Origin: Klebsormidium nitens
Lineage: Eukaryota > Plantae > Klebsormidiophyceae
Direction: 5' to 3'
Length of the DNA stretch: 32,734 bases
NCBI GenBank assembly: GCA_000708835.1
Contig: DF237738.1
Location: forward strand, 1 to 32,734
Below the pieces are notes generated by a model. It had not been told where the DNA came from, did not search any database, and saw nothing but the letters and a program-made list of their open reading frames with translations. A program made the position numbers and the translations under genes. Shown here one piece after another: positions 6,409 to 23,961 of the stretch. How positions within the stretch are numbered: the stretch's first letter is position 1; the number at the start of each line of letters is the position of its first letter.

Positions 6409-6463
6409 GCTCTGCTTTCTGCGATCGAAATGTGCTACATTTTTTCCGCACAGGCTTCATAGC

Positions 6464-6715: not shown

Positions 6716-7929
6716 GTCGCGCGTACGAATACTTACGGTTATGTTCCCTGGTAGAGTAGGTATAATTCAAAGATGGTGAAGAAGCCATCGCAGACCAAAA
6801 ATGCGATTTACTTGAGGGAGCTGAGGGCCAAGGCAAAGGCAGCCAAGGGTCCCAAGCCTCAGAGGCCTCTCATCCCACCACCCCAGGGTGCTGAAGCCAC
6901 GACGCTATGGAAGCAGCACCACGCCTACCAGACCTACTATGGCAGGCCCGATGGGCAGATCTGGAGCGCCAAGCTCGGCAAGGTCCTCCAAGGTACGTTG
7001 CACCCCAACGGCTACAATCTCATCAACATCGACGGGAAGATGGTCAGGAGGTCCCGTTTCAACCTGTCCCTCTCCCAAGGGAGAGCCATCGGGGAGGGCA
7101 TGGAGTGCGACCATATCGTCCCCATCAGTAGAGGAGGTGGGGACGCCTGGTCCAACCTGCAGGAGCTCACGAAGGAGGCTCACAGGCGCAAGACGGCCCT
7201 GGACAACCCTGAGGCAGGTACGAAGCGTGGGATCACCATGGGCGTTCCCATCATCGCGAGCCACGCGGCCACCGGGGACGATACCCGCTTCGATTCGGTG
7301 ATTGCGGCGGCCAGAGAGCTGAAAATCCATCACGTATTCATCGAACGGTCTCTGAGGGTGAGACGATCAGGGGTGACTACGTCTTCTCATATACCCCGGA
7401 GCACCTGGCCGAGCAGGCCGACCTTCCTGGCGAGAGGTGGCTGGAGGCCGTCAGCAGCTGGGGCCTGCTCCCCAAGATCAGGGCCAGCGACCGCGGTAGG
7501 ATCCAAGACTCCAGAAGGAGGCGGAGCTACGGCTGTGACAAGCACGGTTACAAGGTGTTTGGGGCCGCGATCGATAAGAAGAATAGGGACCTCAAGGTGC
7601 ACGACGTCATCGCGAGGACCTTCCTCGAACCCCCTCCCTCTTCGGAGCATACACCCGACCACATCAACGGAGACCCCTCCGACAACCGCGTGGAGAATTT
7701 GCGCTGGGCCACTCCGACGGAGCAAGGCCGGAATAAGAGTAATAATCGCCGCGTCATCCAGCTGGATTCGGTCACCGGACATCACTTGGTGGTCTTCGGA
7801 AGCATAGCGGAGGCCGCAGAGGCCGTTCGGATTTCAGAGAGCAATATTCGCGCTGTAGCAGGAGGCCTTAAACGCATTGCTGGCGGATTCAAGTGGATTT
7901 ACTTAGAGGCACTTCACACTTAGGGACAT
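6638..7929 (+). mobile_element. Double-HNH cassette copy 1 (primase remnant + 55-bp leader + HNH gene + CTTAGGGACAT)
   Basis: Leader 6718-6772 is 52/55 identical to 22731-22785. The terminal 11-mer is at 7919-7929. Confidence 0.75.
6773..7923 (+). pseudogene. Tandem double-HNH endonuclease, frameshifted at about 7355
   Basis: Paralog of 16644-17777 and 22786-23910. It reads CTGAGGGT where copy 3 has CTGAAGGGT (1-bp deletion); the rest of the protein is in the next frame. Confidence 0.9.
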
Positions 7930-7980
7930 AGACAACCATGATGCCACAATATGATTGATGATGTATTAAAAGAATAGTAT

Positions 7981-8931
7981 TCACGGACCCATGTTCTGCC
8001 TAATAAACTTTAAGAATCTCATCGACGGGATATGGGTGCTGTCTATATCGCTACGATTACAGAATCCAAACTGTACGCGGATTAGCTCTCCGTCGACATC
8101 TACGGACGACCAGAAGAAAGCCTCCCCTACGTTGTTGGCCCACAGATTCCCTGCTCTCGACCCTTGAGCCACCGCATTTCCATGCAGTGTCGCTACTGGC
8201 ACCTTTGCGCCACCCACAAACACTTCCAGCCTCTGGAGGACACCTCCGTTCTTGAGCGCTTCATTGAAGAGCCCGCCAGCTGGATAGTAGTCGTCGGTGA
8301 TGCCCTTGATAATCGGATGAAACCATGTTACTCCCTCTCCATCCTCGTCGTTGTATACGAGGGATTCGAGCTGTCCTCCGGTCCTCCCGAATGAATTGAT
8401 CCTGGTGATCGATGCGTCAAGCTCCGAATCGACTAGGATGGCATTTTCAAACTCCTCCTTAAAGCACATCCCACAGACTTCGGGCCTGAAGAACAATTCC
8501 ACCGCGACTTCCGCCCAGTACGAATCCTCTCTACATGTTGCGCACCCGTAGCACACGAGAGTGAGCCGTATGGAAACGTTTCGCATGACGGCGATCAGCT
8601 CTGACTCTGAGTCGAGCGGGCCGCCCTCGAGGTTGGGGCGCGCAAGGTACATTTGTATGCTCTGCTCATAATCTAAAGAAAGCCCAGGCCCCGGGTGACA
8701 ACTCTGGTCAGACGTCATGAGCGCGCGAACCACGTCCAAGTCGGGCGGGGTTGCCAGCGTGTAGAGCCGATCAATTCGCACCCGCAGGCCCCCAAACTCC
8801 AGGCACTTATGGCTCACGTCCTTCCGGCTCTCTTCTCTGCCCAGCTCCAGCTGCTGTCTAAAGTCATTCCTGTCGATGTCTGTCGAAGTCACCCGAATCT
8901 GCAGGAAGATTTCTTGCGTTTTGGTGAACAT
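7981..8931 (-). CDS. Hypothetical protein (316 aa) with CxxC...CxxC
   Basis: Long ATG-started ORF containing CYGCATC and CGMC; no family recognised. Confidence 0.65.
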   Translation of the reverse strand: MFTKTQEIFLQIRVTSTDIDRNDFRQQLELGREESRKDVSHKCLEFGGLRVRIDRLYTLATPPDLDVVRALMTSDQSCHPGPGLSLDYEQSIQMYLARPNLEGGPLDSESELIAVMRNVSIRLTLVCYGCATCREDSYWAEVAVELFFRPEVCGMCFKEEFENAILVDSELDASITRINSFGRTGGQLESLVYNDEDGEGVTWFHPIIKGITDDYYPAGGLFNEALKNGGVLQRLEVFVGGAKVPVATLHGNAVAQGSRAGNLWANNVGEAFFWSSVDVDGELIRVQFGFCNRSDIDSTHIPSMRFLKFIRQNMGP

Positions 8932-8955
8932 GTTTTCTTCTGACCATTAGACAAA

Positions 8956-9563
8956 ATGGGCAGGAGCTTGAAATGGTACATCGTTCCCCGAGAGATCTCC
9001 CATGACGCTACAAAAAAGCTGTGTATGAACCTGGAGTTTGAGCCAGAAGAAGACGAGATCAATGAATGGATCTACGAAAAGGTTCACCGAGAGGACGTGA
9101 TAGACTACGAGCAGAGACCGGTGAACTACTCGGCACTGTTTGGCAGGCAAAAGAGAGTAGTCACTGTCTCGGCTAGGTACCTATACCACGATATTCACTC
9201 TAAGGACTGGTGCCCAAAGTGCAAGATGTTTGCCAGTGGCCTGTACGATTCACAATTGCTCGTGGGATACACAGACGTTCAGCATAACAATCAAAATCCT
9301 ATATGGAGTTCCGATTGGAACATAAAGGGTTTTTACCTTGGGTCGTCCACAACCGACTTCGTACGCCGGTTTGATAACGACCGAATGTACAGGGAGATAT
9401 CAAAATCCGATGTCGAGGATGCATACGATAGGATTGACAGACTTGGGAATTGTTTCCGCATTCAAACCCAGAGGCTAAAGAAGAAGCGACGCAGGTGTTA
9501 GATTGGCTGAGGACGTATGCCGACGACGAAAACGTTCGCATGGTCATGATGGACGATTACTAA
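8956..9563 (+). pseudogene. Hypothetical protein, probable frameshift at about 9438-9458
   Basis: The ORF ends in an odd basic tail, while the -1 frame continues with protein-like PHSNPEAKEEATQVLDWLRTYADDENVRMVMMDDY* up to the next gene's stop. Confidence 0.55.
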
Positions 9564-9976
9564 ATAACGCTAACCTGGGAGAGGAGCAGCTTCCTGCGCT
9601 TCGATGGGCGTAGCAGGTGCCCCCCGATCTTCCCCGCTCTCCCCACCGGTGCTAGGTGTTGATCGATCATCCACGTCCCGCTGCGAGCAGTCCTCGCCAG
9701 GTCTCTGCCCCTGAATATTGCCACCAGCAAGGACCAGCAACCTCTTAGGAAGATTGGGCTGGCCACCTCCACCAGCTTGTGTGAGAATTCAACAGCTCTC
9801 AGCTTCACAGTGTCTCTGCATGTGACACTGTTGAGCCCCATCACCTGAATAGAGTCCTTGACTGGCCCTGGCTGACAAAGGGCTGACAGGAAGCAAGCCA
9901 TATCTCCATTGGCGTCTACCTTGGTAGCAATGGCGTACACTAGCTCAACTGGAAGGCTGTCAAAGGCGGACGCCAT
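9560..9976 (-). CDS. Hypothetical protein with an F-box-like N-terminus
   Basis: N-terminal FDSLPVELVYAIATKV. Confidence 0.5.
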   Translation of the reverse strand: MASAFDSLPVELVYAIATKVDANGDMACFLSALCQPGPVKDSIQVMGLNSVTCRDTVKLRAVEFSHKLVEVASPIFLRGCWSLLVAIFRGRDLARTARSGTWMIDQHLAPVGRAGKIGGHLLRPSKRRKLLLSQVSVI

Positions 9977-10081
9977 TGCCTCACCTCAGTTCAAATCCTC
10001 CCCGGAAGTCCCGAATGAGTGGTCTTTTGAGACCTAAAGGTTCCCAGTCAGTCGGCCGATGCATAATACCGTTTGCGCAAC

Positions 10082-10140
10082 CGCCGGTCGATCAATCATT
10101 ACGCGATTTAATGCAGTCGCCGGTCGAATAATCATGACGC
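10082..10140. repeat. 23-bp imperfect direct repeat (10082-10104, 10118-10140)
   Basis: CGCCGGTCGAtcAATCATtACGC versus CGCCGGTCGAatAATCATgACGC (20/23), in a divergent intergenic region. Confidence 0.75.
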
Positions 10141-10194
10141 CCACGCCCTCTTCAGATGCCTTTCAGACTAAGATATTTTCATTGACTTGCTGAT

Positions 10195-10641
10195 ATGAAG
10201 CGAAAGACGAGGAGCGACGCCATGCTTAGCATGTGCCATCGGCCAGGCTGTGCTGTGATGTAAGTGGCGTTCCCTTCTCAATGGCCTTCAGTATTGCACT
10301 TCAGAATTTTGCAAATTCAGAATTCATATAGGTAGGCAACGCTTTTTGATTGGTTCTTGTTTGTCTGCAGGTACGTGAGAGGAGAGATGGAGGCTCACAC
10401 AGGCGTCTGCGAATCCAGGGTGTGTGAAAAGAAGATGATGGTTGCCGGTTTTCAGCGTGGATGCGACTGGGAGGGGAATGTATTGGACCTCCCAGAGCAT
10501 CCTTGCAAGATGAACGACGGGGGTGCATATCGTTTGGCTACAGAGCTAGCACATGAGATAAACTGCCTGGTTTTCAAGAGCGAGATGAGATTTCCAAAAG
10601 CTGGGGACATTTACTCTCAGACTCCAGGACTTGCAATATGA
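10195..10641 (+). CDS. Spliced Cys/His-rich protein (TRAF/Sina-like zinc finger); exons 10195-10259 and 10371-10641, 111 aa
   Basis: A GTAAGT...TTGTCTGCAG intron (10260-10370) joins in frame, giving CHRPGC...H..VC...C...GCDWEG....EH.C. Confidence 0.65.
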
Positions 10642-10772
10642 CGCTGGTAGATAGTGGAGTTGATCCGGTTCCAAGGGGTGTACATCTCCAGTGAGTTTGG
10701 CCTTAGCTCCAGCAGTAAGACTAGTAGGAACACGCATGCCAGTGCGAGTGCCACAGCGTAGTTGAAATCCAT
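10617..10772 (-). CDS. Small 51-aa single-pass membrane protein (absent from the ORF track)
   Basis: MDFNYAVALALACVFLLVLLLELRPNSLEMY...: a clean hydrophobic anchor followed by a polar tail. Confidence 0.55.
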   Translation of the reverse strand: MDFNYAVALALACVFLLVLLLELRPNSLEMYTPWNRINSTIYQRHIASPGV

Positions 10773-10842
10773 CTTTGTATACATTGACATTTTTCCCGCG
10801 TCTCATGGATCGTATTTTTTTCTCTCAGAAGAGCAAAGAATC

Positions 10843-11379
10843 ATGAGGCGTCACATGCTGGTCATCTGCCTCATCATGTGTGCATCTGTCCCTGGCCCTG
10901 CCCTCGCTGGAATCCCGAGGAGGTCTTTGCTATGCGCTCATAACAAGACTTGCCATAACATTACTGAGACACCAACCCCAACACCTACACCTACCCCATG
11001 CGATAATGTCACAGAGGCTCCCACTCCCGCCCCTGCTCCAGCCATTGTTCCGGTTCCTGCCCCAGCCCCTGCTCCAGCCATTGTTCCGGTTCCTGCCCCA
11101 GCCCCTGATCCATCACCTCCTCCTCCCACGGCCCCAGCTCCAACGATTCCAGCCACGCCGCCGCCCGAAGTTTTACCAATCGATATTCCATCTCCTCCAC
11201 CTCCACCTCCCACGACCCCAGCTCCAACGATTCCAGCCACGCCGCCGCCCGAAGTTCTACCGATTGATGTCCCATCTCCTCCACCTCCGCCTCCTCCCAC
11301 AACCCCCGCTCCGACATCGTCAGCTCAAGTCTGCTTTAACGAGAGTCAACTGAAACTTTGCAGTTGCACATGTGTGTGA
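10843..11379 (+). CDS. Secreted proline-rich (extensin-like) glycoprotein
   Basis: Signal-peptide-like N-terminus, NKT/NIT/NVT sequons, SPPPP and AP repeats, C-terminal CSCTC. Confidence 0.75.
   Translation: MRRHMLVICLIMCASVPGPALAGIPRRSLLCAHNKTCHNITETPTPTPTPTPCDNVTEAPTPAPAPAIVPVPAPAPAPAIVPVPAPAPDPSPPPPTAPAPTIPATPPPEVLPIDIPSPPPPPPTTPAPTIPATPPPEVLPIDVPSPPPPPPPTTPAPTSSAQVCFNESQLKLCSCTCV
11029..11300 (+). repeat. Intragenic repeats: 36 bp x2 (11029-11100) and about 84 bp x2
   Basis: APAPAIVPVPAP occurs twice with identical DNA. APTIPATPPPEVLPID starts at 11137 and 11221. Confidence 0.9.
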
Positions 11380-11411
11380 TGCACAAAAAAGTTTGTCAAC
11401 ATCATAGATCA

Positions 11412-12446
11412 ATGACTTCGATCGCCCTCATCAACCTCTCAGAATCCGTCAAGCCCCATATTGGGATGCACATGTACAAGGCATGCTTGGAGCAGTTGCG
11501 GCTGATGTGCAAGGCTTGGGGCTTGCCTCGTGCCAGACTCGTCTACTTGGCTATGTTGGGCCCTCTTGACGCCCTAACATTTCCGGTGTTCATCTTAGAT
11601 AACGTCCATCAGGTTTCCGGCTGGAAAGATGATGGGAGACCCTCACGCAGCCTCATTGTGCAAAATGTCTTGAAGCAAAAGGGAGGCCTACTACAGGGGC
11701 CCACAGGCAATTCCGTCAGCGTCTCGGTCAGCCGTCTGGTGCTCGAGCTCTTCCACGAGCTCAACAAGGACACGCGCACGCCTATCTGCTCTCAAGTTTC
11801 ATCGACGAGTTGCACCATTAATCTGGTTAATGCCAAAGTCAAGGTAGACGTTTCCAACTTTGTATTCCCTTCCTGGTTCGATCCGAATGCTCAAGCACCT
11901 TTTGATCAAGCTGGCCATTGTCTTGGTCCCAGGGTTGCCGAGGCAGACCAGGTGCCCACAGCGGTAGCCAACAGCGCAGCCGACAGCCAGCCAACGGCGC
12001 AGCCAACAGCTAGCCAACAGCGCAGCCGGGCAGTTCGAGAGGAAAAAGAGGAGAGCTTCCACTCCCCAGCAACCACCTCCACTCCTTTAACGCCTCATGT
12101 ACCAGAGAAAGTGGAAGTGTCAAACGCACCCACTTACCGTGACGCCCCCAGCGAATCCGACATCCTGACCTACCCAGACAGCGAGTCAGACATCCTGACC
12201 TACCCAGAGATCCCTGAGGCGGGCCCCACGATCCGAGACGCCCAGCTCTCTGTGACGCAAATACCCCCCACAATCGTAGCACCCGATGTCGAGAGCCCCG
12301 CCCAGCTTCCTGCAACGCACGCATCCCCAACAATCGTAGCGACAGAAACGCGCACCCCCAAAATCGTAGAGCCCGATGCCCCTCCCCAAGTTCGGAGAGT
12401 GAGGAACATCCGGGAACTGATACCCAAAAGGAGCGTGTATACTTGA
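11412..12446 (+). CDS. Hypothetical protein: degenerate metallopeptidase-like N-domain plus P/T/S-rich tail
   Basis: IALINLS...SVSVSVSRLVLE...VSNFVFPSWFDP..APFD resembles a family I recall as having SHE.LE at that position. A 30-bp repeat x2 lies at 12150-12209. Confidence 0.55.
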   Translation: MTSIALINLSESVKPHIGMHMYKACLEQLRLMCKAWGLPRARLVYLAMLGPLDALTFPVFILDNVHQVSGWKDDGRPSRSLIVQNVLKQKGGLLQGPTGNSVSVSVSRLVLELFHELNKDTRTPICSQVSSTSCTINLVNAKVKVDVSNFVFPSWFDPNAQAPFDQAGHCLGPRVAEADQVPTAVANSAADSQPTAQPTASQQRSRAVREEKEESFHSPATTSTPLTPHVPEKVEVSNAPTYRDAPSESDILTYPDSESDILTYPEIPEAGPTIRDAQLSVTQIPPTIVAPDVESPAQLPATHASPTIVATETRTPKIVEPDAPPQVRRVRNIRELIPKRSVYT

Positions 12447-12477
12447 GAGGCGTTATTTTCTGTGATGAGAGCACAGC

Positions 12478-12903
12478 ATGTCCATAGACGTAGGCGCCCT
12501 TTTAAACAATGTAAACAGTTTCAGGAGGAGTCACAGTGCCCCAGCAGTGCAGTGGGATGCAGGCATCGCCTCCGTATCTCAGGCCTGGGCCGACCGTAAG
12601 AGATATGCCCACAGCGGTACTTCGAATTACGGAGAAAACCTCGCAAAGGTCTGGGCCAAGGAGGCTGACTTCAAGACCGCAATCTCACTGTGGGCAAAAG
12701 AATTGGACGCGTACAACTATGATTCTCCTAGTTTCAGTCCGACGACGGGTCATGGGACGGCGCTGGTCTGGAAATCGAGTACTAATATCGGCGCGGGTGT
12801 GTCTCAGCTGGCGGACGGATCTTATTTCTACGTCATGAACTTTGCACCACCAGGAAACGTGAGAAGTCAAGAGCTCTTTAGGCAGAATGTGACGCAAAAA
12901 TAA
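12478..12903 (+). CDS. CAP/SCP (PR-1/GAPR-1-like) domain protein
   Basis: Motifs N.FR..H.AP.V.WD, YGENLA, W..E...Y.Y, GHGTALVWK and Y.PPGN (here FAPPGN). Confidence 0.9.
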   Translation: MSIDVGALLNNVNSFRRSHSAPAVQWDAGIASVSQAWADRKRYAHSGTSNYGENLAKVWAKEADFKTAISLWAKELDAYNYDSPSFSPTTGHGTALVWKSSTNIGAGVSQLADGSYFYVMNFAPPGNVRSQELFRQNVTQK

Positions 12904-12913
12904 TCAGTATGTT

Positions 12914-13432
12914 ATGGATGACATGTCAATCTTGCAGACGAGTCTCTCACTGAACAAACAGCTGCAGGATAGGTTTGCAAAGTTGGGGAGTTTTGTAGAA
13001 CGGGTAAAGGGGTTACGAGATGCAAAGGTTGCCAACGAGCAGCGCATATCAGACTTGCGTGGGCATATATACGACCTAGAGCGTATAAGCCCAGCACCGC
13101 AGCGAGCAAGGCGTCCGAAAAGAAAAAACCAGTGGAGCGAGCTCGCAAAGATCGTCGGAGCTCAGAGAGGACGCGTGAGTGTGGTCGGCCGGTCGACACA
13201 GACGATACGAGTTGAGCTGACGGGCAACGTGGGTGTGAAGAAGGCCTCTACGCTCATGAAGAAGATGTCGATTTCTCACAACCTGGGAAGCAGCCATCGA
13301 TTCGAGAGGCACTTGGTCTTCACAAAAGGTCGGCAAACACCAGAGTCGGTCGGTCGCCTGCTCGCAAAGCATAAGAAGGGTACAGGAGCTGTCGTCTTCC
13401 ATGCTGGCCTCGTTCACCACATAGTGAAATAA
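12914..13432 (+). CDS. Hypothetical basic protein with an N-terminal coiled coil
   Basis: ATG-started ORF 10 bp after the CAP gene; K/R-rich. Confidence 0.55.
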   Translation: MDDMSILQTSLSLNKQLQDRFAKLGSFVERVKGLRDAKVANEQRISDLRGHIYDLERISPAPQRARRPKRKNQWSELAKIVGAQRGRVSVVGRSTQTIRVELTGNVGVKKASTLMKKMSISHNLGSSHRFERHLVFTKGRQTPESVGRLLAKHKKGTGAVVFHAGLVHHIVK

Positions 13433-13491
13433 CATCTCGTTCAACTCCCACCCGCGCTCGCTCGAGGCGACGAATAATCTGAGCCCTATCC

Positions 13492-13884: not shown

Positions 13885-13957
13885 GAGATTCTCCATGTAT
13901 TCCGTTTTGGAGAGCGCGTACGTGTGATCCAAACGTTCTCTCGACCACAATACAACG

Positions 13958-15709
13958 ATGAACGTCCTCGTCCTACTGCTTGCTGGTCAGATTTGTTTAG
14001 GGCAACTCAGCTCAGCTCACCCGAGCATCGATTATCAGTCTGCCCTCTCGACGGGCTTACTATTTCTCGACGCGCAGCGAAGCGGGAAGCTCCCTCCGGA
14101 GCAACCGATCCCTTGGCGCAGTGACTCTTGCCTCGGCGACGGCGCTGATCACGGCATCGACCTGACGCAGGGCTATTTCGACTCTGGAGACTTTTGCCTC
14201 TTCGGCCTCCCTCTCGCCTACACCGTGACCATGCTCTCGTACGGTTTGGTAGAGTATGGCACGTTGTATGGCCCCAACTACGCGCCGGCTTCCGACGCCG
14301 TCCGGTGGGGCACTGACTGGTTGATAAAGGCGCACGCATCCCCCAATGAGCTTTACGTACAGGTGGGAGACGGCAACATAGACCATAAATGCTGGCAAAG
14401 GCCCGAGAACCTGACCACACCGAGACCTTCTTTCGCAGTGAACGTCACCAGTCCAGGAACGGAACCTGCAGCAGAGGCCGCAGCGGCCCTCGCTGCGGCA
14501 TCGATTGTCTTCAGAACGTCGGACCCTGCATACTCTCAGACCTTGCTGGTTCAAGCCGCGCACCTGTTCCAATTTGCAGACAAGTACCGTTTAACTTACG
14601 CGGTTTCGGTGCCTCAGGCAGCAGCCTTTTACAACTCCTACTCTGGTTACGGCGACGAGCTCCTGTGGGCTTCGGCCTGGCTGTTCAGAGCCACGTCCGA
14701 TCCGGTCTACCTCCGGTATGCAACCGGCCCGAATTTCGCTGACCCGTCGCTGGGGTGGCAAAACGCCGTCACCGAATTCAGCTGGGACAGCAAGCTAGCG
14801 GGAGCGGTCGTTCTCTGGAGCCAGCTGGCTCCACCTGGCGCTTCGGTCCCTCTCGATCATTACAGGCAGGTTGCAAACGACTTCGCATGCCATTACGTGG
14901 CACCCAACGGTGTGCAAAAGACGCCGGCTGGTCTCGCTTGGCTGCGCGAATGGAGCCCGTTGCAGTACGTCACGAGCAGTTCCTTCTTGATCGCGGCCTA
15001 TGCGGACCACCTAGGGAATGCCACCGTCACCTGTCCAGATCGGGCCTACTCTGCTTTCGAGTTGATTTTTTACAGCCAGGGGCAGGCCGACTACATATTG
15101 GGGTCGAACCCGCTCAGCTTGAGCTACATGGTCGGCTTCACTGCATCGTATCCTACCCACGTCCACCATCGCGCTGCGTCCATACCCCAAGACGGGATCG
15201 AATACACCTGCGATGGCGGCTTCCAATTCTTCTCGACACCAAAACCCAACCCTACCATCGTTGCTGGGGCGATCGTGGGCGGTCCGGATGCGTCGGATGG
15301 CTATTTGGACGTCAGGAGCGAATTTCAACAGTCTGAGCCCAGCACGTACACCTTGGGGTGCTTCCTCGGTCTCCTTGCGAGGCTGTCTGGTAGCGTTCCT
15401 GGTGTGCCGGTGGCGAGCTCTGGCGCGCCTCCCACAAGTGCGCCCCCAAGCGTCGCTCCTGGATCAGCACCTACCGCTGCCCCGAGCATTGGCGCGCCTC
15501 CCCCGAGTGTTGGGCCCGGTGCGGCACCTACACCGGTACCTAGCGCAAGCGCCTCGGCCCCAAGCGTCGCTCCTGGATCAGCACCTACGAGAGTTCCTAG
15601 CGCGCCCCCAAGTGTTGCTCCTCCCAGCGCGGCACCTACGCCGGTGCCTAGTGCAAGCGTAGGTCCTCCTGGGTTTGTACAATGTATGTGTGCTTGCAAC
15701 GGATTTTGA
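13958..15709 (+). CDS. Plant-type GH9 endo-1,4-beta-glucanase with signal peptide and Pro/Ser/Ala-rich tail
   Basis: Motifs LFLDAQRSGKLP, GYFDSGD, LYVQVGDG..DH.CW.RPE, YGDELLWA, SWDSK, HHR and SEPST. Intronless. Confidence 0.95.
   Translation: MNVLVLLLAGQICLGQLSSAHPSIDYQSALSTGLLFLDAQRSGKLPPEQPIPWRSDSCLGDGADHGIDLTQGYFDSGDFCLFGLPLAYTVTMLSYGLVEYGTLYGPNYAPASDAVRWGTDWLIKAHASPNELYVQVGDGNIDHKCWQRPENLTTPRPSFAVNVTSPGTEPAAEAAAALAAASIVFRTSDPAYSQTLLVQAAHLFQFADKYRLTYAVSVPQAAAFYNSYSGYGDELLWASAWLFRATSDPVYLRYATGPNFADPSLGWQNAVTEFSWDSKLAGAVVLWSQLAPPGASVPLDHYRQVANDFACHYVAPNGVQKTPAGLAWLREWSPLQYVTSSSFLIAAYADHLGNATVTCPDRAYSAFELIFYSQGQADYILGSNPLSLSYMVGFTASYPTHVHHRAASIPQDGIEYTCDGGFQFFSTPKPNPTIVAGAIVGGPDASDGYLDVRSEFQQSEPSTYTLGCFLGLLARLSGSVPGVPVASSGAPPTSAPPSVAPGSAPTAAPSIGAPPPSVGPGAAPTPVPSASASAPSVAPGSAPTRVPSAPPSVAPPSAAPTPVPSASVGPPGFVQCMCACNGF
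15430..15670 (+). repeat. Degenerate APPSV(A/G)PGSAPT repeats in the GH9 tail
   Basis: CCAAGCGTCGCTCCTGGATCAGCACCTAC occurs twice, with related variants. Boundaries are approximate. Confidence 0.8.
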
Positions 15710-15792
15710 TGGGCCACGGATACGGACCCAAACAACAGCGATTGAAAAGTGCGTCCGTTGCACTAGAAATATTGTGCACGTATATACAAGGT

Positions 15793-16647
15793 ATGGTGTG
15801 TGTGCCTTCTATTAGTACGTTTGCGGCCGAGCGGGGCATTACTCGCTCGTCCATGGAGACTATGCTCAACATGTTCAATTCTGACGACTTCCCCCGGATT
15901 CGGATATCTGATTTGGACCTCTACGTGTGTGCTATGACGCACAAGAGCACGTTGAAAGAGTACTCTGCAGCCCAAGGCTCCAACGAGAGACTCGAGCTCT
16001 TGGGCGACAGCGTATTAGGATTGATCGTCACAAAGTACATATTCGATAGGTACACCGGTGAAGATGAGGGGTTTATGACCAGGATTCGCACCAAATTGGT
16101 ATGCGGTGAGGCGTTGTCGGCGTGGGCCTTGAAGCTCGGGCTTCAGGAATTCTTGATGATGAATTCCAAGGCCCTTCAACGGCAGTGGAACTTGAACCCG
16201 AGCAAGCTTGAGGATGCTTTCGAGGCCTTGGTCGGAGCCTTATTCGAAGACTGTGGGATCTCAGCATGTCGCAATTTCATTTACAATCTTCTGAAACGCG
16301 TAGATTTCGTGGAGGTGGAACGAGACACGAATTGGAAGGAGTCTCTGATGCGGCACCTCCAGGGAATGTACGCAAACATGTCTAGTAACAATATCGGGCA
16401 GGACATGTTTACGCCGATGTATGCCGTGGAGGACTTTGGAGGAGACGGCAACGACGTGAAACAATTTCGCGTGAGTGTGAGCATAGGTGGGAGGGTTTTT
16501 GGCCGCGGAATCGATCGTAAGAAGAAGGCAGCGGAGCAGATGGCAGCACATTCTGCACTTTGCCAGATTACTGAAAGCGGACGTCTCCCGCTATATTCCA
16601 ACAAATCGACCCTCCGAGTTCCCAATCTCGGTATAGTATGTCCCTAA
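15793..16647 (+). CDS. rnc: Ribonuclease III with dsRNA-binding domain
   Basis: Signature NERLELLGDSVLG, EGFMTRIRTKLV, DAFEALVGA and dsRBD GRG..KKAAEQMAA. The start codon is uncertain. Confidence 0.93.
   Translation: MVCVPSISTFAAERGITRSSMETMLNMFNSDDFPRIRISDLDLYVCAMTHKSTLKEYSAAQGSNERLELLGDSVLGLIVTKYIFDRYTGEDEGFMTRIRTKLVCGEALSAWALKLGLQEFLMMNSKALQRQWNLNPSKLEDAFEALVGALFEDCGISACRNFIYNLLKRVDFVEVERDTNWKESLMRHLQGMYANMSSNNIGQDMFTPMYAVEDFGGDGNDVKQFRVSVSIGGRVFGRGIDRKKKAAEQMAAHSALCQITESGRLPLYSNKSTLRVPNLGIVCP
16559..16634 (+). repeat. 76-bp direct repeat, copy A (inside the RNase III 3' end)
   Basis: 70/76 identical to 17873-17948. Confidence 0.95.
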
Positions 16648-17872
16648 GTGTGGAGTGCCTCTGAATAAATCCACTTAAATCCGCCGGTAGCGAGTCGGCG
16701 GCCCGCTGCTACATTGCCGATATTACTTGCAAATATCCCAAGAGCCTCTGCGGCCTCAGCGATGGTACCAAAGACCGCCAACTGCGCTCCGGTGATCAGA
16801 TCCAGCTGGATAACGCTGCGATTTGACTTCTGATTCCTGCCTTGTTCCGTCGGAGTGCCCCAGCGCAAATTCTCTGAGCGGTTGTCGGACCGATCTCCGT
16901 TGATGTGGTCGGGAGTATGCTCCGACGAGGGAGGGGGCTCGAGGAAGGTCCTGGCGATCACGTCGTGCACCTTGAGGTCCCTCTCATTCTTATCGATCGT
17001 GGCCGAAAATCGCTTGTAGCCGTGCTGATCTCTGCCGTAGCTCCGCCTTCCTCTGGATTCCTGGATCCTACCGCGGTTGCTGGCCCTGATATTGGGGACG
17101 AGACCCCAGCTGCTGACGGCCTCCAGCCACGTCTCGCCGGGCAGGTCGGCCTGTTCGGCCAGGTGCTCCGGAGTATATGAGAAGACGTAGTCGCCCCTGC
17201 TCGTCAGGCCATTCAGATACCTATCGATGACAGTGTGGTGGATTTTGAGCTCTCTGACCGCATCACGAACCGAATTGAAGCTGGTCTCGACTCCGGTAAC
17301 CACGTGGCGCGCGACGATGGGGATGCCCGTGGTGATGCCCGACTTCTTGCCCGCGTCGGGGTTGTCCGAGACGGTCTTGAGCCTGTGATCCGGCTTTGAA
17401 AGCTCCTGCAGGTTGGCCCAGTCATCTCCACCTCCTCTACTGACGGGGACGATGTGGTCGCACTCCATCCCCTCCTCGATGGCGCGTCCGAGGGAGAGCG
17501 ACAGGTTGAAACGAGACCTCGGGCCGTCCTTCCCGTCGATTTTGATGTAGCCGTAGCCATCGGATCTGCTGAAACCTTCGATGACCCGGCCGGTCTTGGC
17601 GCTCCAGACCCTCCCGTCTGGTCTGCCGTAGTAGGCCGGGTAGGCGTGGTGCTGTTGCCACCCCTGGAGCACGGGTGGTGGGATCAGAGGCTTGGGACCC
17701 TTGGCTGCCTTTGCCTTGGCCCTCATCTCCCTCTGGTAGATGGCATGATTGGTCGGTGAGAGCTGCTTCTTCACCATTGTCGAATTATACCTACTCTACC
17801 AGGGAACATAACCGTAAGCATTCGTACGCACGGCTTGCGTCAGGTCTTTGAATCCGCGCTGCTCAAATTGCG
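16638..17872 (-). mobile_element. Double-HNH cassette copy 2, flanked by a 76-bp target duplication
   Basis: Leader 17778-17832 (51/55 identical to the copy 3 leader), terminal ATGTCCCTAAG at 16638-16648, primase remnant at about 17835-17880. Confidence 0.85.
16644..17777 (-). CDS. Tandem double-HNH endonuclease with NUMOD1-like modules (intact, 377 aa)
   Basis: HNH-1 is CDHIVPVSRGG..DWANLQ..H and HNH-2 is PDHINGDRSDNRSENLRW...N. Each is followed by an F.S/TI.EA...L.I helical module. Confidence 0.92.
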   Translation of the reverse strand: MVKKQLSPTNHAIYQREMRAKAKAAKGPKPLIPPPVLQGWQQHHAYPAYYGRPDGRVWSAKTGRVIEGFSRSDGYGYIKIDGKDGPRSRFNLSLSLGRAIEEGMECDHIVPVSRGGGDDWANLQELSKPDHRLKTVSDNPDAGKKSGITTGIPIVARHVVTGVETSFNSVRDAVRELKIHHTVIDRYLNGLTSRGDYVFSYTPEHLAEQADLPGETWLEAVSSWGLVPNIRASNRGRIQESRGRRSYGRDQHGYKRFSATIDKNERDLKVHDVIARTFLEPPPSSEHTPDHINGDRSDNRSENLRWGTPTEQGRNQKSNRSVIQLDLITGAQLAVFGTIAEAAEALGIFASNIGNVAAGRRLATGGFKWIYSEALHT

Positions 17873-17948
17873 TTTGTCAGATCACGGAGAGCGGACGTCT
17901 CCCGCTATATTCCAACAAATCGACCCTCCGAGTTCCCAACCTCGGCAT
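17873..17948 (+). repeat. 76-bp direct repeat, copy B (orphan RNase III 3' end abutting the ATPase stop)
   Basis: Encodes the same CQITESGRLPLYSNKSTLRVPNLGI peptide as copy A. Confidence 0.95.
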
Positions 17949-17949
17949 T

Positions 17950-18735
17950 TCACTTTGACTTGCGCACCCTGATGCCGTTGCTGGTGACAACGACCTCGTT
18001 TCTCTTTTGCAGCTCTGAATCTGCGTACGTGCGATTGTGATGTGCCCAATATGCCGGCGCCCCGATCTTGAAGTGCTCGTGGATGTCTGCCTTGTACCAG
18101 AATATTGCATCGGTCGGTTCCGTGCTCTGGACGGTGTTGTCCAACACGAGGCATTCGTGCTTGCTGGTACACGCCTTGAAGACCGCCTCAAACTGTGAGA
18201 ACGTCTTGAACACGCCAAACAGGTGGTCGTAGTACCTCTTACGGTTGGCGAGGATCGGGTCGTTGTATATGAAGACGTAATCAATGTTGGATCGGACGGG
18301 TGGAGGTATGTCCATGATGTACTGAGACGCCAAGATGACCATGAGGCCGAAATGGCGGCCATTCATGTATAGATAGCGCATGGTGTCAGACTTCATGATG
18401 TTTTGCTTGAAGAGGCAGTCATCCAGGAGGAGGAAGACGCTGGAGTCTTTGACCTTGAGTCTCGTGAGATTCTTCTGCCTGGCGATTAGTTTTTTGATGA
18501 TCTCCTCGTCGAAGGTGTCGTATATGAAACTGTCTGGTATGAACTTGCGGTAGAAGCCGTTGCCGTCCTCTGAGCCGCTTATGACGATTCCGGCTGGAAT
18601 CTGCCGCTTGTGGTACAGTATGTCGGCTATGAGGGTCGTCTTCCCGACGCCCCGTCTGCCAATGACTACGACCGTCTTGTGGTCCTGAAGCTTTGACATG
18701 TCAAACTTTTTGATGTTGAAATCGCCTGCAGCCAT
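17950..18735 (-). CDS. A32-like virion DNA packaging ATPase
   Basis: Walker A GRRGVGKT, ISGSEDGNGFY, Walker B LLLDDC, MNGRH. ATG at 18735. Confidence 0.95.
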   Translation of the reverse strand: MAAGDFNIKKFDMSKLQDHKTVVVIGRRGVGKTTLIADILYHKRQIPAGIVISGSEDGNGFYRKFIPDSFIYDTFDEEIIKKLIARQKNLTRLKVKDSSVFLLLDDCLFKQNIMKSDTMRYLYMNGRHFGLMVILASQYIMDIPPPVRSNIDYVFIYNDPILANRKRYYDHLFGVFKTFSQFEAVFKACTSKHECLVLDNTVQSTEPTDAIFWYKADIHEHFKIGAPAYWAHHNRTYADSELQKRNEVVVTSNGIRVRKSK

Positions 18736-18767
18736 GGCTTTTGGACGGAAAAAAACGGGCACACATA

Positions 18768-19046
18768 TCAGCGCAATTTGAGCGCCAGGGTAGATGTTTT
18801 TGGCAATACCCTCTCACCAATCAGGATTACTCCAGCTGCAACGGCGCCGATGACTACCAACTCTTGATCCGAAATGGCCGCACCGTACACGGGTGCGTAG
18901 CGCACTATCGCAGCTACCACCAGGCCGTAGATGACGTATTTGGCCAGAACTATGATCACGTGCCTGAGGCTGCAGAGGCCACTGTTGTAGTCTTCGTCGT
19001 AATTTTCCTCGTAATTCTCCTCGAACGACTCTTGGTGTGGGTCCAT
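18768..19046 (-). CDS. Small two-TM membrane protein of the kind found beside NCLDV A32 ATPases
   Basis: KYVIYGLVVAAIVRYAP...ELVVIGAVAAGVILI pattern; immediately upstream of the ATPase. Confidence 0.6.
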   Translation of the reverse strand: MDPHQESFEENYEENYDEDYNSGLCSLRHVIIVLAKYVIYGLVVAAIVRYAPVYGAAISDQELVVIGAVAAGVILIGERVLPKTSTLALKLR

Positions 19047-19144
19047 CTTAGCGATATAATACGACAAGAGAAAAAACACCGGTGGGGGCCTGGCGAAGTG
19101 CTCCTCGCGTGCGTTTGGCATTGACTTAATTCCCCACAGATGGC

Positions 19145-19576
19145 ATGGCTACCGAGCTGTATCTGGATGAGGATCCGTTGAAAGTATCTGGTATCAGCTT
19201 TGCGATCGTGAGCTTCGCCACCCCGAACGGCCCTCAAAAGTGCTCGACCTTCGGCCTCAAGATCCGCGGGGCCTTTGACACCTTGGAAGACGCGAACGCG
19301 CACGTGAAGAGATTGATTGCATTGGATCCAAATTTCGACATCTTCGTAGTGGATTGCTACCGCTGGCTGCGCATGCCTCCGGACCCAGAGGTCATCGACA
19401 AACAGATCTATCAGGACCCCCAGTTGAATGCGATAATGGCAGGCCACAAGGACGAGCAGTTGAAGGCCAAGGCCCACTTTGAGGAGAGGAAGCGTCAGGT
19501 GATGGCGGAGGGTCTCGACGCGGTGGCGGAGGAAGGAGGTGGAGGGGCCAGCACCTCAGCTGGGCCTTCGCAGTAA
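19145..19576 (+). CDS. Conserved NCLDV protein (DUF5832-like; label from memory)
   Basis: Motifs YLDEDP..., SFATP, GLKIRGAFDT.E.A, DP.FDIFV and Y....LN.IM. Confidence 0.65.
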   Translation: MATELYLDEDPLKVSGISFAIVSFATPNGPQKCSTFGLKIRGAFDTLEDANAHVKRLIALDPNFDIFVVDCYRWLRMPPDPEVIDKQIYQDPQLNAIMAGHKDEQLKAKAHFEERKRQVMAEGLDAVAEEGGGGASTSAGPSQ

Positions 19577-19593
19577 AACCTCGTTCAATTCAT

Positions 19594-20010
19594 ATGGACG
19601 CTTCTGCCTTGGTGAACGCGGCGATGAAGCTCGACCCAAAAGTACTGGTTCCCATTCTGTTGGGCTTGGGCCTCATCGCGTTCCTCAGTCCGCTGATCAG
19701 CGTGCTGCAGCTCTTTGGCATCCTGCTGGTGCTGACGGCAGCCCTGCTCTACGTTCGTCAGGACGATGTATCGAACAAGCGCAAGCGCCTGCAGCAGGGT
19801 AACAGGGATCTGGACCCCGCAACGGCCGCGATGGCTGCCGCAGAGGCGGCGACGGCCGCCGCCCGAGCTGCGAAAGGCTCGAAGCAAGTCGAGCTGTTGC
19901 CAACGTTGGACATGTTCTACGACAAGAGCAACATCGGGGCCTATATATCGGACAATATGTTTGGTGCGGCGTCTGCCCATGATTCGACACCACAGGCACC
20001 CCGGTCCTGA
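19594..20010 (+). CDS. Hypothetical membrane protein
   Basis: Two hydrophobic segments at residues about 15-50. Confidence 0.65.
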   Translation: MDASALVNAAMKLDPKVLVPILLGLGLIAFLSPLISVLQLFGILLVLTAALLYVRQDDVSNKRKRLQQGNRDLDPATAAMAAAEAATAAARAAKGSKQVELLPTLDMFYDKSNIGAYISDNMFGAASAHDSTPQAPRS

Positions 20011-20088
20011 GTCACTGCGCAGCGCTTGAGCTTAGGGATTACGGGTACTTAGGAGGATAGTGCGCTTCAATTAAGTAACCAATTATCT

Positions 20089-22728
20089 ATGTATTTATCA
20101 GGATCCATGAACCCCACGGCGTCCATCACGGCTACGATCAGGGACCTCGCAGGGGCAGAATTCTACGCCATTCCAGTCCGCATCTACCTGTCCTCGGGCA
20201 AGAAGAAGTCGCAGTTTCCACGCACGTGGAAGAACTTGGACACCGTCTCCACTTGGAAGGCCCAGATCGCAGACGTCATCAAGGAGTGCCCGAACGCGAA
20301 CAGCGTCGCGATATTGACGGGCATCAGCGACCTGTTTGTCCTCGACGTCGACCTCATGGCCTCCGCCGGCAAGAGGTCGGGTTTCGACCTGTGGGAGGTT
20401 CTGGTCGCCGAGCATGGTTCGCCCGACACGCTCCAGGCCAAGACGGGCTCGAACGGTCGGCATTTCTACTTCCGGAGGAACGACTCTACAGGATTAACGC
20501 GCCGCCGGAATTTCGCTGGCCTGAAATTTGAACGCGAGCGGTACGCCATCGATGGAAGAGGGGAGGGCGGAGTCATCTTCGCCCCTCCCAGCAGCTACAA
20601 GGACGAGGACGGCATCACCTACTCGTACGAGTGGCAGAACGGGGACCCACACTGTGGCTGCAACCCCATGCCACAGTGGCTGATCCAGTTGGTCAACTCC
20701 CAGGGGTCGGACGAGGTGCCCCCTCTGATCGGTGGCACTCCCGACGACGAGCCGCTGTCTCCCGAGCCCATATCGGCCCCGAGGAGCCCTGTCGTTGATT
20801 AGAGTGCCATCGTGCGCGAGATGCGGCAGCTCTTGCTAGAACGGGCCGGCGATTCCACGAGCACGTTTGGCGGCACGGTAGAGCACGGCTGTCTCGGCAC
20901 GTACTACTGCTTTCGAGTACATGGGCCCAGGCAATGCTACTTTGGTCGTCAGCATTCCGGCAGCAATAACTTTAACTGCCTCAAGAGGGGCAAACGTGTC
21001 TATGTGCGGTGCCATGGCAGCGAATGCAGCCATGAACCGCCTCGCTACCTCGGAGATCTGTCCCTACAGTCCTCATTGCTCGACGCCTGCCGCGAGCCCC
21101 TGCACGATGTGGACGACTACTCGGTCCTGAACGTGCGTCAGATGCAGGGCGAGGAGCTCCGCCTGTTGATCGCCTTCCTGACAGAGAACGTAGGAGACTC
21201 CTATAGCGGTCTCGGCCGTATCTTTGGCTACGTCTTCGCCAAGGACGGCCGGATCCTGGTCACCGGGCCCAAGAAGCAGTTCTACTACTGGAACGGCCGG
21301 GTCTGGGTGCTGGACGAGTCCAACCGCGTCGTCACCACCTTCTCCTACAAGATGTCGACGCTCTTCAAGTGGTACGACACCCGACGCGATCGGCGCTTCG
21401 AGCGCAAGCTCAGCGAGAAGGGCCTCGTGAACGGGACCGAGAGTGTTGCCCAAACGGTCGCAGCCCTCGATAAGCGAGGCTCCAAGGCCATCATCAAGGC
21501 CTGCTGGGACGAGGTGGACGCCGAGCTGCCGCCGAACCGCATCAACGTCAACTCCCCCAAGGAGGCCCGAGCTTGCCTTGACTACGTCACGAGCGTCTTG
21601 TACGATCCCGAGATGATCAAGCTCATGGATTGCGACATCGACTCGGTCGGCTGTCCGAACGGCGTCCTCGACCTGAGGACGGGCATTTTGAGCTTCGCGC
21701 ACCCGAGCCAGCTCTGCACCCGCTCGACCGGCGTACGTTACATGGGGTTGAGCCACAACACGGACCGCTTCGACGCGTTCGTGATGGATCTCTTCAACTC
21801 CGACGAATCGATCGTCCGGTGGCTCCAGCTGTTCCTCGGTTACGCTCTGACAGGTCATACCAGCGAGGAGATCTTTTGCATCTGGTATGGAGCCGGGAGC
21901 AACGGCAAGAGCGCTCTCAAGATGGCTCTCCAGAAGGCGTTCGGGTCATACTACACGCCCATGAGCAAGGACTGCATCATCAAGGCCGGTGGGAAGCGGG
22001 CCGAAGGAGCCGCCTCCAGCCACCTCGTTGCCCTCAAGGGCGCTCGTCTGGCCCTATGCGACGAGTCCGAGGAGAGCCAGGTCATCAACTCCGCTTGCAT
22101 CAAAGAGATGACGGGTGGAGGTGCGGTCACCTGCCGGGAGCTCTTCCAAAAGTGCGAGAGCTTCGTGCCGACGCACGCCAACGTCCTGCTCACCAACCAC
22201 AAGCCCAGCATAGCCGACGCCGACGGCGGCCTCCTGCGCCGGGTGTCCCTCCTCCCGTTCCGAAATTCCTACAAGGTCGCGGAGGAGGTCGACCCCAACG
22301 ACCCTCACTCCAAGCCGCAGTCCACGCACCTCAAGACGTGGCTGGAGAGCTCGGAGGGAGCCGAGGAGTGCCTGGTATGGGTCGTGCGAGGCAGCGTAGA
22401 ATGGTATGCTCGCCAAAGCGCCAACCCGGCCGCGAAGGTGCTGGCTCCGCTGCCGGCTCCGATGGCGGCCGCTTTCGACGAGTACTTGCGCGAGTTTGAC
22501 GACATGCGCATGTTCTTGAAAGAGTTTTGCGACATCGGGCCGACCTTCGTCGCTCCGTCTGCGGACCTTTTGGCTCGATTCAATGCGGAGATGAATTCCG
22601 ATCTCAAGGCACGCGCCTTTGGTATCGCTTTGACCAAGAGAGGATTTCAGCAGATCGAGTTTACTGTAGATAGGATCAGGCGTCGCGGATTCAAAGGACT
22701 GAAATTGCGAGATATGGCCACGGGCTAA
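20089..22728 (+). CDS. Prim-Pol (bifunctional primase-polymerase) / D5-type SF3 helicase, interrupted by an in-frame TAG at 20800-20802
   Basis: Prim-Pol motifs LFVLDVD, TGSNGRHFYF, IDGRGEGG and APPS. D5 motifs CPNGVLDLRTG, YGAGSNGKS, LCDES, KEMTGG and TNHKP. Both ORFs are in the same frame. Confidence 0.9.
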
Positions 22729-22730
22729 TC

Positions 22731-22785
22731 CGCGCGTACGAATGCTTACGGTTATGTTCCCTGGTAGAGTAGGTATACTTCGAAG
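22731..22785 (+). promoter_or_regulatory. Conserved 55-bp HNH leader (also at 6718-6772 and 17778-17832 on the minus strand)
   Basis: 93-95% identical across the three copies, directly before the HNH ATG. The function is inferred. Confidence 0.65.
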
Positions 22786-23910
22786 ATGGTGAAGCAACAG
22801 GAGCTCTCTCAGACAAAGGCAAAGGCAGCCAATCTTCAGAGGCCTCTCATCCCACCACCCCAGGAAGAAGCCCCATCCAATCAATGGAAGCAGCATCACG
22901 TCTACCTGGCCCACTACGGCAGGCCAGACGGGCAGATTTGGAGCGCCAAGGTCGGCAGGGTCCTCGAAGGTTACGTTGACCCCGATGGCTACTACCGTAT
23001 TACAATCGATGGGAAGCAGGTCCAACGGTCGCGCTTCAACCTGGCACTCTCCCTCGGACGCGCCATCCGAGAAGGATTCGACTGCGACCACATCGTCCCC
23101 GTGAGTAGGGGAGGTGGGGACGCCTGGTCCAATCTGCAGGAGCTGACGAAGGAGGCTCACAGGCGCAAGACGGCCGCGGACAACCCCGACGCGGGCACGA
23201 AGCGGGGAATCACGATGGGCATTTGCATCATCGCACGTCACACGGGAAACGGAGTCGGGTTGCGGTTCGATTCGGTGAAAGCGGTGGAGAGAGAGCTCGG
23301 GATCAGTCACGGAGTCATCGACAGGTCTCTGAAGGGTGCGACGATCACAGGCGACTATGTCTTCTCGTACACCCCGGAGCACTTGGCCGAGCAGGCCGAT
23401 CTGCCTGGCGAGATTTGGCGAGAGGCCGTTAGCCGCCTTGGTCTGCTCCCCAATATCAAGGCCAGCGACCGCGGTAGGATCCAGGACTCCAGAAGGAGGC
23501 GGAGCTACGGCTGCGACAAGCACGGTTACAAGGTGTTTGGGGCCGTGATCGATAAGAAGAGGGACCTCAAGGTGCACGACGTCATCGCGAGGACCTTCCT
23601 CGAACCCCCTCCCTCTTCGGAGCATACCCCCGACCACATCAACGGAGACCCATCCGACAACCGCGCCGAGAACTTGCGCTGGGCCACTGATACTGAGCAG
23701 GGCAGGAATCAGAAGTCAAATCGCCGCGTGGTGCAGCTCGATCTGATCACCGGAGAGCAGTTGGCTATCTTCGACAGTATTGCTGCAGCGGCAGAGACGG
23801 TTGGGATCTCTGCGTGCACTATCACGAATGTAGCAGGGGGGCGCGCCCTTACTGCCCGAGGTTTTGCGTGGCGGTATGCCGAGGATGCACTGCGCAGCGC
23901 TGTTGCTTAG
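22786..23910 (+). CDS. Tandem double-HNH endonuclease (intact, 374 aa), copy 3
   Basis: Same two HNH motifs as copies 1 and 2; ends in CTTAGGGACAT (23906-23916). Confidence 0.92.
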   Translation: MVKQQELSQTKAKAANLQRPLIPPPQEEAPSNQWKQHHVYLAHYGRPDGQIWSAKVGRVLEGYVDPDGYYRITIDGKQVQRSRFNLALSLGRAIREGFDCDHIVPVSRGGGDAWSNLQELTKEAHRRKTAADNPDAGTKRGITMGICIIARHTGNGVGLRFDSVKAVERELGISHGVIDRSLKGATITGDYVFSYTPEHLAEQADLPGEIWREAVSRLGLLPNIKASDRGRIQDSRRRRSYGCDKHGYKVFGAVIDKKRDLKVHDVIARTFLEPPPSSEHTPDHINGDPSDNRAENLRWATDTEQGRNQKSNRRVVQLDLITGEQLAIFDSIAAAAETVGISACTITNVAGGRALTARGFAWRYAEDALRSAVA

Positions 23911-23961
23911 GGACATGCGATACTTACGGAGATGTTAGGAGATCTAGAATAGTCAAGAATC

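Follow-up and report, generated by a model that had tools for sequence, protein, structure and literature searches.

Free-standing homing-endonuclease genes comparable to the element described here are found in phages and giant viruses, and include the seg and mob gene cassettes of T4-like phages. Repeated elements of giant viruses include DNA transposons and miniature inverted-repeat transposable elements (MITEs), among them the Pandoravirus 'submariner' MITEs, and also IS607/TnpB elements. In mitochondria, mobile open reading frames (mORFs) duplicate the C-terminus of the host gene, as in Allomyces atp6 and in Glomus atp6, atp9, cox2 and nad3 (PMC3630166). We analyzed a 32,734-nt stretch of the Klebsormidium nitens assembly GCA_000708835.1 (contig DF237738.1, positions 1 to 32,734; this whole stretch is called the window below), which contains three copies of a cassette encoding a tandem-HNH protein. 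Inserts of nucleocytoplasmic large DNA viruses (NCLDV, phycodnavirus-like) were previously reported from K. nitens (PMC5294986), and the window is phycodnavirus-like giant-virus DNA within the assembly. We propose that the cassettes are probably a family of free-standing homing-endonuclease genes, in which the conserved leader is the promoter of the gene and the shared 3' end is the relic of a promoter. The family would have spread by swaps of the open reading frame (ORF) at occupied sites and by invasions of new sites.

The sequence-only reading of the window had described three copies of ~1.2 kb each, and we recovered all three at the places it named. The first copy lies on the plus strand. 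Its leader (6718-6772) consists of a putative promoter motif, ATACTTACGG, whose CTTACGG core is 41 nt before the ATG, and a predicted 5' untranslated region (UTR), and it is followed by a tandem-HNH ORF at 6773-7923. This ORF is split by a 1-nt deletion near 7355 into two pieces (6773-7807 and 7555-7923), and the break reflects either a pseudogene or a sequencing error. The 3' motif CTTAGGGACAT of this copy occupies 7919-7929, with the TAG stop at 7921-7923, and the word AACCATGATG comes next at 7934. The second copy is on the minus strand, with the leader (putative promoter motif and 5' UTR) at 17778-17832, an intact ORF of 377 amino acids at 16644-17777 and the 3' motif at 16638-16648, which on the plus strand gives an RNase III gene its TAA stop (16645-16647). 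The leader of the third copy (22731-22785, plus strand) begins directly after the stop codon of a D5 primase-helicase gene. Its ORF (22786-23910, plus strand; 374 amino acids, intact) runs into the promoter region of a DNA ligase gene and ends at a TAG there. All three copies are intergenic, and each has its own copy of the lineage promoter motif 41 nt before the ATG.

We scanned the cassette proteins and the larger ORFs of the window with Pfam. Every copy contained HNH (PF01844), NUMOD1, HNH_3 (PF13392) and NUMOD-like domains, and the PF01844 and PF13392 matches were above threshold in the second and third copies. Each HNH was followed by a match to NUMOD1 or to the NUMOD-like part of I-HmuI, indicating that a modular DNA-binding part is present. 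Each protein is built of two modules in tandem, each consisting of a beta-rich N-terminal part, an HNH and a NUMOD helix-turn-helix. I-HmuI itself (PDB 1u3e) matched with an E value of 3.6e-8 over the N-terminal beta-rich part and the second HNH, and the catalytic columns CDH..N..H and DH.N..N..N were invariant in 17 family members. An AlphaFold model generated from 17 close sequences was poor (pLDDT 45) and unusable. We considered the double-HNH architecture as a novelty and rejected this, since it is widespread among the best 150 representatives: an exhaustive profile search yielded 363 representatives at E <=1e-30, and among the 150 best-scoring clusters at least 20 spanned both modules and most carried two HNH_3 stretches. 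An endonuclease borne by a group I intron or an intein was likewise rejected. Rfam matched no family in the window and no ribozyme core was found, Pfam found no Hint domain in the cassette protein, and only ~55 + 11 nt around the ORF are non-coding. The absence of a transposase, integrase or reverse transcriptase, as stated earlier, held for the cassettes and the larger ORFs of the window. Judged by these sequence features, the cassettes are free-standing I-HmuI-like tandem-HNH homing-endonuclease genes of one family.

Relatives were obtained by a word-indexed protein search and subsequent exact-protein look-ups that gave contigs. The former yielded 24 close family members, which came exclusively from K. 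nitens and the JGI metagenomes 3300060284 and 3300060285. The leader 19-mer had 0 matches in IMG/VR, and protein-guided locus searches of IMG/VR and JGI metagenome contigs found no relatives. One contig, L001, was syntenic with the window at ~91% identity and had cassettes at all three window sites. In a second syntenic contig, L003, the RNase III and D5-ligase sites are filled, and so is a fourth site. Further copies were present in other genome regions (L005, L007, L008 and L010-L012), and in L013 and L014, whose RNase III is 57% identical, the RNase III gene adjoins the A32 gene with no cassette between them. A distant family member of ~40% identity, annotated 'putative endonucleases', was also noted at 10402-11514 of L015 (K. 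nitens scaffold DF237601.1), where it sits between intron-bearing ankyrin-repeat genes and large host-like genes.

We then compared filled and empty sites, as the sequence-only reading had proposed. The fourth-site cassette of L003 (3400-4696, copy L3_b) is absent from L001 and from the corresponding position of the window (19453-19536, plus strand), which is the 3' part of a DUF5832 gene. In L003 this 3' coding region flanks the cassette on both sides as a direct duplication of 83-84 nt. An all-against-all comparison of the loci detected no further filled/empty pairs. The interval between RNase III and A32 was invaded twice independently, once by the second window copy and its L001 orthologue (L1_b) and once by the L003 copy L3_a, with different junctions and different duplications (76 versus 44-50 nt). 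L3_a has a 44-50 nt duplication of the 3' end of the A32-like gene, and L003 has a single copy of the RNase III C-terminal stretch (D8) that is duplicated around the second window copy. Because the junctions differ and D8 is single in L003, each genome shows the pre-insertion state of the other. The claim of a mobile family at unrelated loci was thus supported by the polymorphism at the fourth site, the double invasion of the RNase III/A32 interval and the replacement of ORFs at the same site.

Evidence for replacement came from the comparison of cassettes with their surroundings. Cassettes at the same site in different genomes were ~78% identical, with 69-70% identity at third codon positions, while the flanking genes were 85-88% identical at third positions. 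At a given site the ORFs have thus diverged much further than the sequence around them, a sign of turnover. The divergent tract begins immediately behind the ATG and stops shortly before the conserved 3' stretch. A tree of 16 copies was a star in which only the second window copy and L1_b were sisters (92% identical), and the best matches shifted along the sequence, forming a mosaic. Across the family, identity at the first, second and third codon positions was 79, 80 and 65%, indicating purifying selection.

The leader had been noted to be better conserved than the coding sequence, and this was borne out with 89-95% identity for the leader versus 77-80% overall for the ORF (69-74% at third codon positions). 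The leaders of the first and third copies were 95% identical over 64 nt, pairs with the second copy were 89-91% identical over 74-76 nt, and each leader was 96.7-98.4% identical to the consensus of the leaders. The window has four occurrences of the word ATRCTTACGGNNATGTT, one in each of the three leaders and one immediately before the ligase gene. We searched 179 kb of sequence (the window and its relatives) for CTTA[ACG]G[AG]N and found 111 occurrences. More than a third of these (39/111) preceded the ATG of an ORF of at least 100 amino acids by a distance of 25-75 nt (37-45 nt in most cases), while six permuted control motifs gave only 2-17 such upstream cases out of 74-178 occurrences. The genes with the motif upstream were D5 Prim-Pol, ligase, VLTF3, several EsV-1-7-type genes, the HNH genes and others. 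CTTANGRA was not enriched in the window alone (6 seen versus ~5 expected); the enrichment appears only by position relative to gene starts, across the 179 kb. In distant HNH copies the rest of the leader is gone and GCGCGTA..CTTACGRA is kept at the same distance. We interpret the leader as the gene's own promoter and 5' UTR, with the lineage motif TA-CTTA[CAG]G[GA] ~40 nt before the ATG, and transcription would start downstream of the TACTTACGG motif. The motif is a likely core promoter motif for a poorly known group of giant viruses of streptophyte algae.

The leader is constrained, or homogenised, beyond this core motif, since all of its 55 nt are 92-98% identical across paralogues while an adjacent non-functional relic of the D5 gene has diverged by ~25% and contains indels. 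In addition to its role as a promoter, the leader may possibly serve as an operator for autorepression of the endonuclease, as I-TevI autorepresses at its own promoter, or as a 5' homology arm for ORF swaps; we consider such a second function a tentative supplement to the promoter role. Besides the conservation of the full leader, the tract of high divergence begins right after the ATG, and the leader contains an imperfect palindrome, ATACTTAC..GTAGGTAT. On the other hand, the predicted RNA structure of the leader was no better than that of shuffled sequence (z -0.7 to +1.4), and the distant copies keep the core motif only.

The shared 3' end was confirmed, as the window has exactly three occurrences of CTTAGGGACAT, one per cassette end. 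The TAG inside it is the stop codon of all three ORFs. The motif holds stop codons on both strands, and RNase III, in the window and also in L001 (11014-11017), stops at a TAA on the complement of the cassette end (CTTAGG/CTTAAG). At the third copy, the 'end' at 23906-23916 is the distal motif of the ligase promoter region (23888-23961, plus strand), and a proximal motif, ATACTTACGGAGATGTT, follows at 23920-23936. The two motifs lie 56 and 39 nt before the ligase ATG. The region upstream of D5 Prim-Pol (20013-20058, plus strand) has CACTGCGCAGCGCT..GCTTAGGGA..TACTTAGG in common with the 3' end of the third copy and the ligase promoter. The ligase and D5 genes each have two upstream copies of the motif, at about -56/-58 and -39/-41, preceded by CACTGCGCAGCGCT. 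The first and second cassettes carry a shortened form of this D5/ligase promoter stretch (GCACTYCACACTTAGGGACAT), with no promoter after it. We interpret the 3' CTTAGGGACAT as a hitch-hiked relic of a D5/ligase-type promoter region, namely its distal motif. A supposed 'fourth copy' at 20013-20058 was rejected, being the D5 promoter region with no HNH remnant.

Sequences upstream of the leaders also pointed to the D5-ligase site. Directly upstream of the first leader, 6635-6717 (plus strand) holds a relic of D5 C-terminal codons (ADLKGRSF..LTKRGFEQ). BLASTP of the ORF at 6206-6712 against D5 residues 596-614 gave an E value of 0.001, and at the nucleotide level the relic could be aligned to the 3' end of D5 in the window, L001 and L003. 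Local alignment gave z values of 6-10 relative to shuffles. A shortened relic (..FEQRGFKDL..) accompanies the second copy at 17833-17872 (minus strand), and its junction with the displaced D8 copy, D8b, is in the microhomology CTGRC(C)AAA. Such relics (..DLK.R.F..LTKRGF[EQ]Q..RGFK..), with differing internal deletions, were present upstream of the first copy, its L001 orthologue (L1_c), the second copy and L3_a, and these copies therefore descend from the D5-ligase site. Descent from this site also explains why the leader is in frame with the stop of the upstream gene (..ARTNAYGYVPW*) in all three window copies. We rejected the in-frame leader as independent evidence, since the first and second copies received the D5 frame along with the D5 relic.

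Other donor sequences had also been carried along. L3_a contains ~150 nt of upstream flank of the type seen at the first copy. The 10-mer AACCATGATG, a spacer word of the first copy's locus, also follows the end of L1_b, and in ~200 kb it occurs only at these two places, in both cases right behind a cassette. For the 85 nt of flank upstream of L3_b, no match was found in the ~200 kb of window and related loci compared. The start of the copied unit varies between 105 and ~200 nt before the ATG, and its end between a point within the ORF (L3_b) and +35 nt. The element thus has no fixed termini and drags a variable donor flank along. From these flanks we infer a spread from the D5-ligase site to the site of the first copy, and from there, twice, to the RNase III/A32 interval.

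The second copy and its L001 orthologue both lie between 76-nt duplications of the last RNase III codons. In the window, the gene-proximal copy (D8a, 16559-16634, plus strand) comprises the last ~25 codons of RNase III, and the displaced second copy of this C-terminus (D8b, 17873-17948, plus strand) adjoins the stop codon of the A32-like ATPase gene; the two are 92% identical. We looked for flanking duplications at every cassette, and none was found for the first and third window copies or for L1_a, L1_c, L3_c, L5, L7, L8 and L10-L12. The duplications detected were 76, 83-84 and 44-50 nt long and all consisted of host-gene C-termini (RNase III, DUF5832 and A32-like). Short target-site duplications of constant length were rejected, as the lengths vary, most copies have none and the duplicated sequences are host C-termini. 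The gene-proximal copy keeps the reading frame and has additional changes, most of them synonymous. The distal copies of L001 and L003 are the ones that most resemble the single native copies (97% for D8b of L001 versus L003), over tracts of only ~76-84 nt, and in the window both D8 copies are equally distant (89%). A foreign origin of the gene-proximal copy is only weakly indicated. Two routes to the duplications are compatible with the data. The DNA may have been nicked at two staggered positions, perhaps by one HNH module each, and filled in after capture of the cassette, or the donor gene end and the cassette may have been copied together by homology on one side and joined by microhomology on the other.

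A family member was also observed inside a gene. At 9879-11247 of L007, a cassette lies antisense within polB (minus strand), at motif C. We examined the two sides of the interruption separately; positions 113-202 of PF00136 matched the upstream polB piece and positions 229-288 the downstream one. The interruption is bounded by G/GTGAG and polypyrimidine-CAG/ (slashes mark the boundaries), and by eye, splicing would restore ..CGDTDS.. in the product. An apparent duplication around this cassette was not significant. It is conceivable, and we offer it only tentatively, that the cassette invades the coding sequence of essential genes and is tolerated through duplication of the C-terminus or, at polB of L007, as the body of a spliceosomal-type intron. 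To our knowledge, the solution by C-terminal duplication has not been described for giant viruses. Separately, the large subunit of ribonucleotide reductase in L008 (15175-21125) was found to be split into several ORFs, one with a Hint (intein) domain, indicating that other selfish elements occupy core genes in this virus group. IS607-like serine resolvase and TnpB (Cas12f-like) genes were noted at L005 12571-13997 and L008 1061-2917, not adjacent to HNH cassette ends.

Taken together, we consider a free-standing homing-endonuclease family, spread by ORF swaps and new-site invasions, to be the best explanation, with a probability of roughly 0.65. The oldest site would be the one between D5 and ligase, from which the gene would have been copied out with the distal promoter motif. 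Where a site is already occupied, other family members replace the ORF that lies between the conserved leader and the 3' region. New sites are invaded at the 3' ends of genes, where the cassette arrives with a variable donor flank and comes to lie between two copies of 44-84 nt of host C-terminus, so that the host gene keeps its full reading frame. The encoded nuclease would nick or cut cassette-free DNA, and viral recombination-dependent repair would copy the cassette in, forming one junction through homology or co-conversion and the second through microhomology. The outcomes of the moves are seen in the sequences, and a driving role of the nuclease is our inference.

An unlikely alternative is a passive paralogue family, in which general viral recombination (segmental duplication, template switching and gene conversion) spread and shuffled the HNH genes, the nuclease took no part and the duplications are by-products of template switching. 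Passive spread would be in line with the variable copied ends, the carried donor flank, the single junction with microhomology and the lack of a visible shared target motif, and these genomes rearrange anyway, as seen in multi-copy EsV-1-7-type genes and in an unrelated 2.7-kb insertion that breaks L1_b (L001 7296-10008). This insertion contains three ORFs, one of them SSNA1/coiled-coil-like, and has no copy elsewhere in the ~200 kb compared. However, it has no flanking duplication, while the HNH family is the unit that repeatedly moves and is replaced at several sites. Moreover, both catalytic motifs are kept under purifying selection, and the insertion at motif C of polB in L007 is at a classic homing-endonuclease target.

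The sequence-only reading had favored an endonuclease-driven, transposon-like family, of which the mobility and the lack of a transposase stood, the transposon-like ends did not, and the nuclease as a driver has the conditional standing given above. In that view the HNH protein would bind the leader and CTTAGGGACAT as recognition ends, which together would make up an imperfect terminal inverted repeat. Each window copy indeed has both motifs, conservation is much higher in the leader than in the ORF, and some copies lie between long direct duplications. The proposed inverted match between ATGTTCCCT and ATGTCCCT also exists as a string, but it is near chance: a shuffled leader contained this 8-mer with at most one edit in 2.3% of trials, before correction for the choice of word. 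Nor was it kept in relatives, as L1_c has ATGTTACCT, L3_b lacks the 3' motif and the distant copies lack both. We rejected a terminal inverted repeat with fixed ends, and a true transposon-like element is highly improbable and already largely refuted, given that the match is 8 nt with an indel (p ~0.02 before multiple testing) and shows no co-variation, both boundaries of the unit differ by copy, the motif in the leader is one that promoters of this lineage share generally, the 3' motif is part of the D5 and ligase promoters, where there is no cassette end, and the duplications are variable in length and made of host C-termini.

Several observations weigh against the homing-endonuclease explanation. 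The window's own three sites are filled in close relatives too, and the fourth site provides the sole clean pair of empty and filled alleles. The invaded sites show no target sequence in common. Flanking duplications surround only 3 of the ~16 copies, and the evidence for which duplicate is native is noisy and comes from ~76 nt. Gene conversion could homogenise the leaders and so keep them alike without selection on a promoter. The second copy and L1_b are 93, 93 and 91% identical at the three codon positions, which is neutral since the split of the window and L001, and the first copy and several core genes are broken. Because of this neutral evolution and these broken genes, present-day activity in the window is doubtful.

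The scan of the larger ORFs of the window identified an NCLDV major capsid protein (4419-5825, minus strand), GH9 (13958-15709), RNase III (15682-16647, plus strand), the A32-like ATPase (17950-18762, minus strand), the DUF5832 gene (19145-19576), D5 primase-helicase in two pieces (Prim-Pol at 20089-20802 and D5_N at 20812-22728) and NAD-dependent DNA ligase (23962-25860). An in-frame TAG at 20800-20802 cuts the D5 gene of the window, where L001 and L003 read CAG; in L001, D5 is a single ORF of 917 amino acids. Together with the 1-nt deletion in the first cassette, this stop codon suggests that the viral copy in the window is already decaying. We also noted ~6 copies of ACCCTAAA (TTTTAGGG on the other strand), a telomere-type unit of green algae, at 28626-28676. 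This array is interstitial, within viral DNA, just upstream of a MYND-finger gene (27490-28593, minus strand). Coding tandem repeats were present as 84-nt LRR-like units (1608-1809) and as 36- and 84-nt proline-rich units (11016-11294).

The repeat is not a new class of transposon; if our interpretation is correct, it is a selfish homing-endonuclease gene family. The series of insertions would show how such genes colonise new sites, imprecisely, with donor flanks and with duplication of the host C-terminus, and the cassettes would be useful markers of strain turnover in endogenous giant-virus elements. Compared with giant-virus transposons and MITEs, the cassettes are similar in being repeated units at unrelated loci, some with direct duplications. 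They differ in having no terminal inverted repeats, fixed ends or transposase, and their duplications are long, variable and mostly absent. The IS607-like resolvase and TnpB pairs, although present in related contigs, are unlinked to the HNH cassettes. Free-standing endonucleases of the I-HmuI and HNH_3-NUMOD type are closer, since they share the HNH_3 and NUMOD modules and the sequence match to 1u3e. Like free-standing HNH endonuclease genes, the cassettes are intergenic with their own promoter, are polymorphic for presence and absence between related genomes and are replaced by one another at the same locus. In contrast to them, the cassettes encode two nuclease modules in tandem (itself common), occur in multiple copies at unrelated loci of one genome and show ectopic insertions with donor flanks and long duplications, and no cognate cassette-free allele of the window's three sites was found among close relatives. 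As in the mORFs, an endonuclease ORF lies at the 3' end of a host gene with a copy of the C-terminus on each side (RNase III, and in L003 DUF5832 and A32-like); the proximal copy keeps the frame with mostly synonymous differences and the distal copy is displaced. Unlike the mORFs, which encode LAGLIDADG or GIY-YIG enzymes, the cassettes encode an HNH endonuclease, frequently run antisense to the host gene and come with a promoter of their own; their duplications are shorter (44-84 nt), and they reside in the genome of a giant virus and not of an organelle. The mORF phenomenon of mitochondria would thereby extend to a giant-virus genome.

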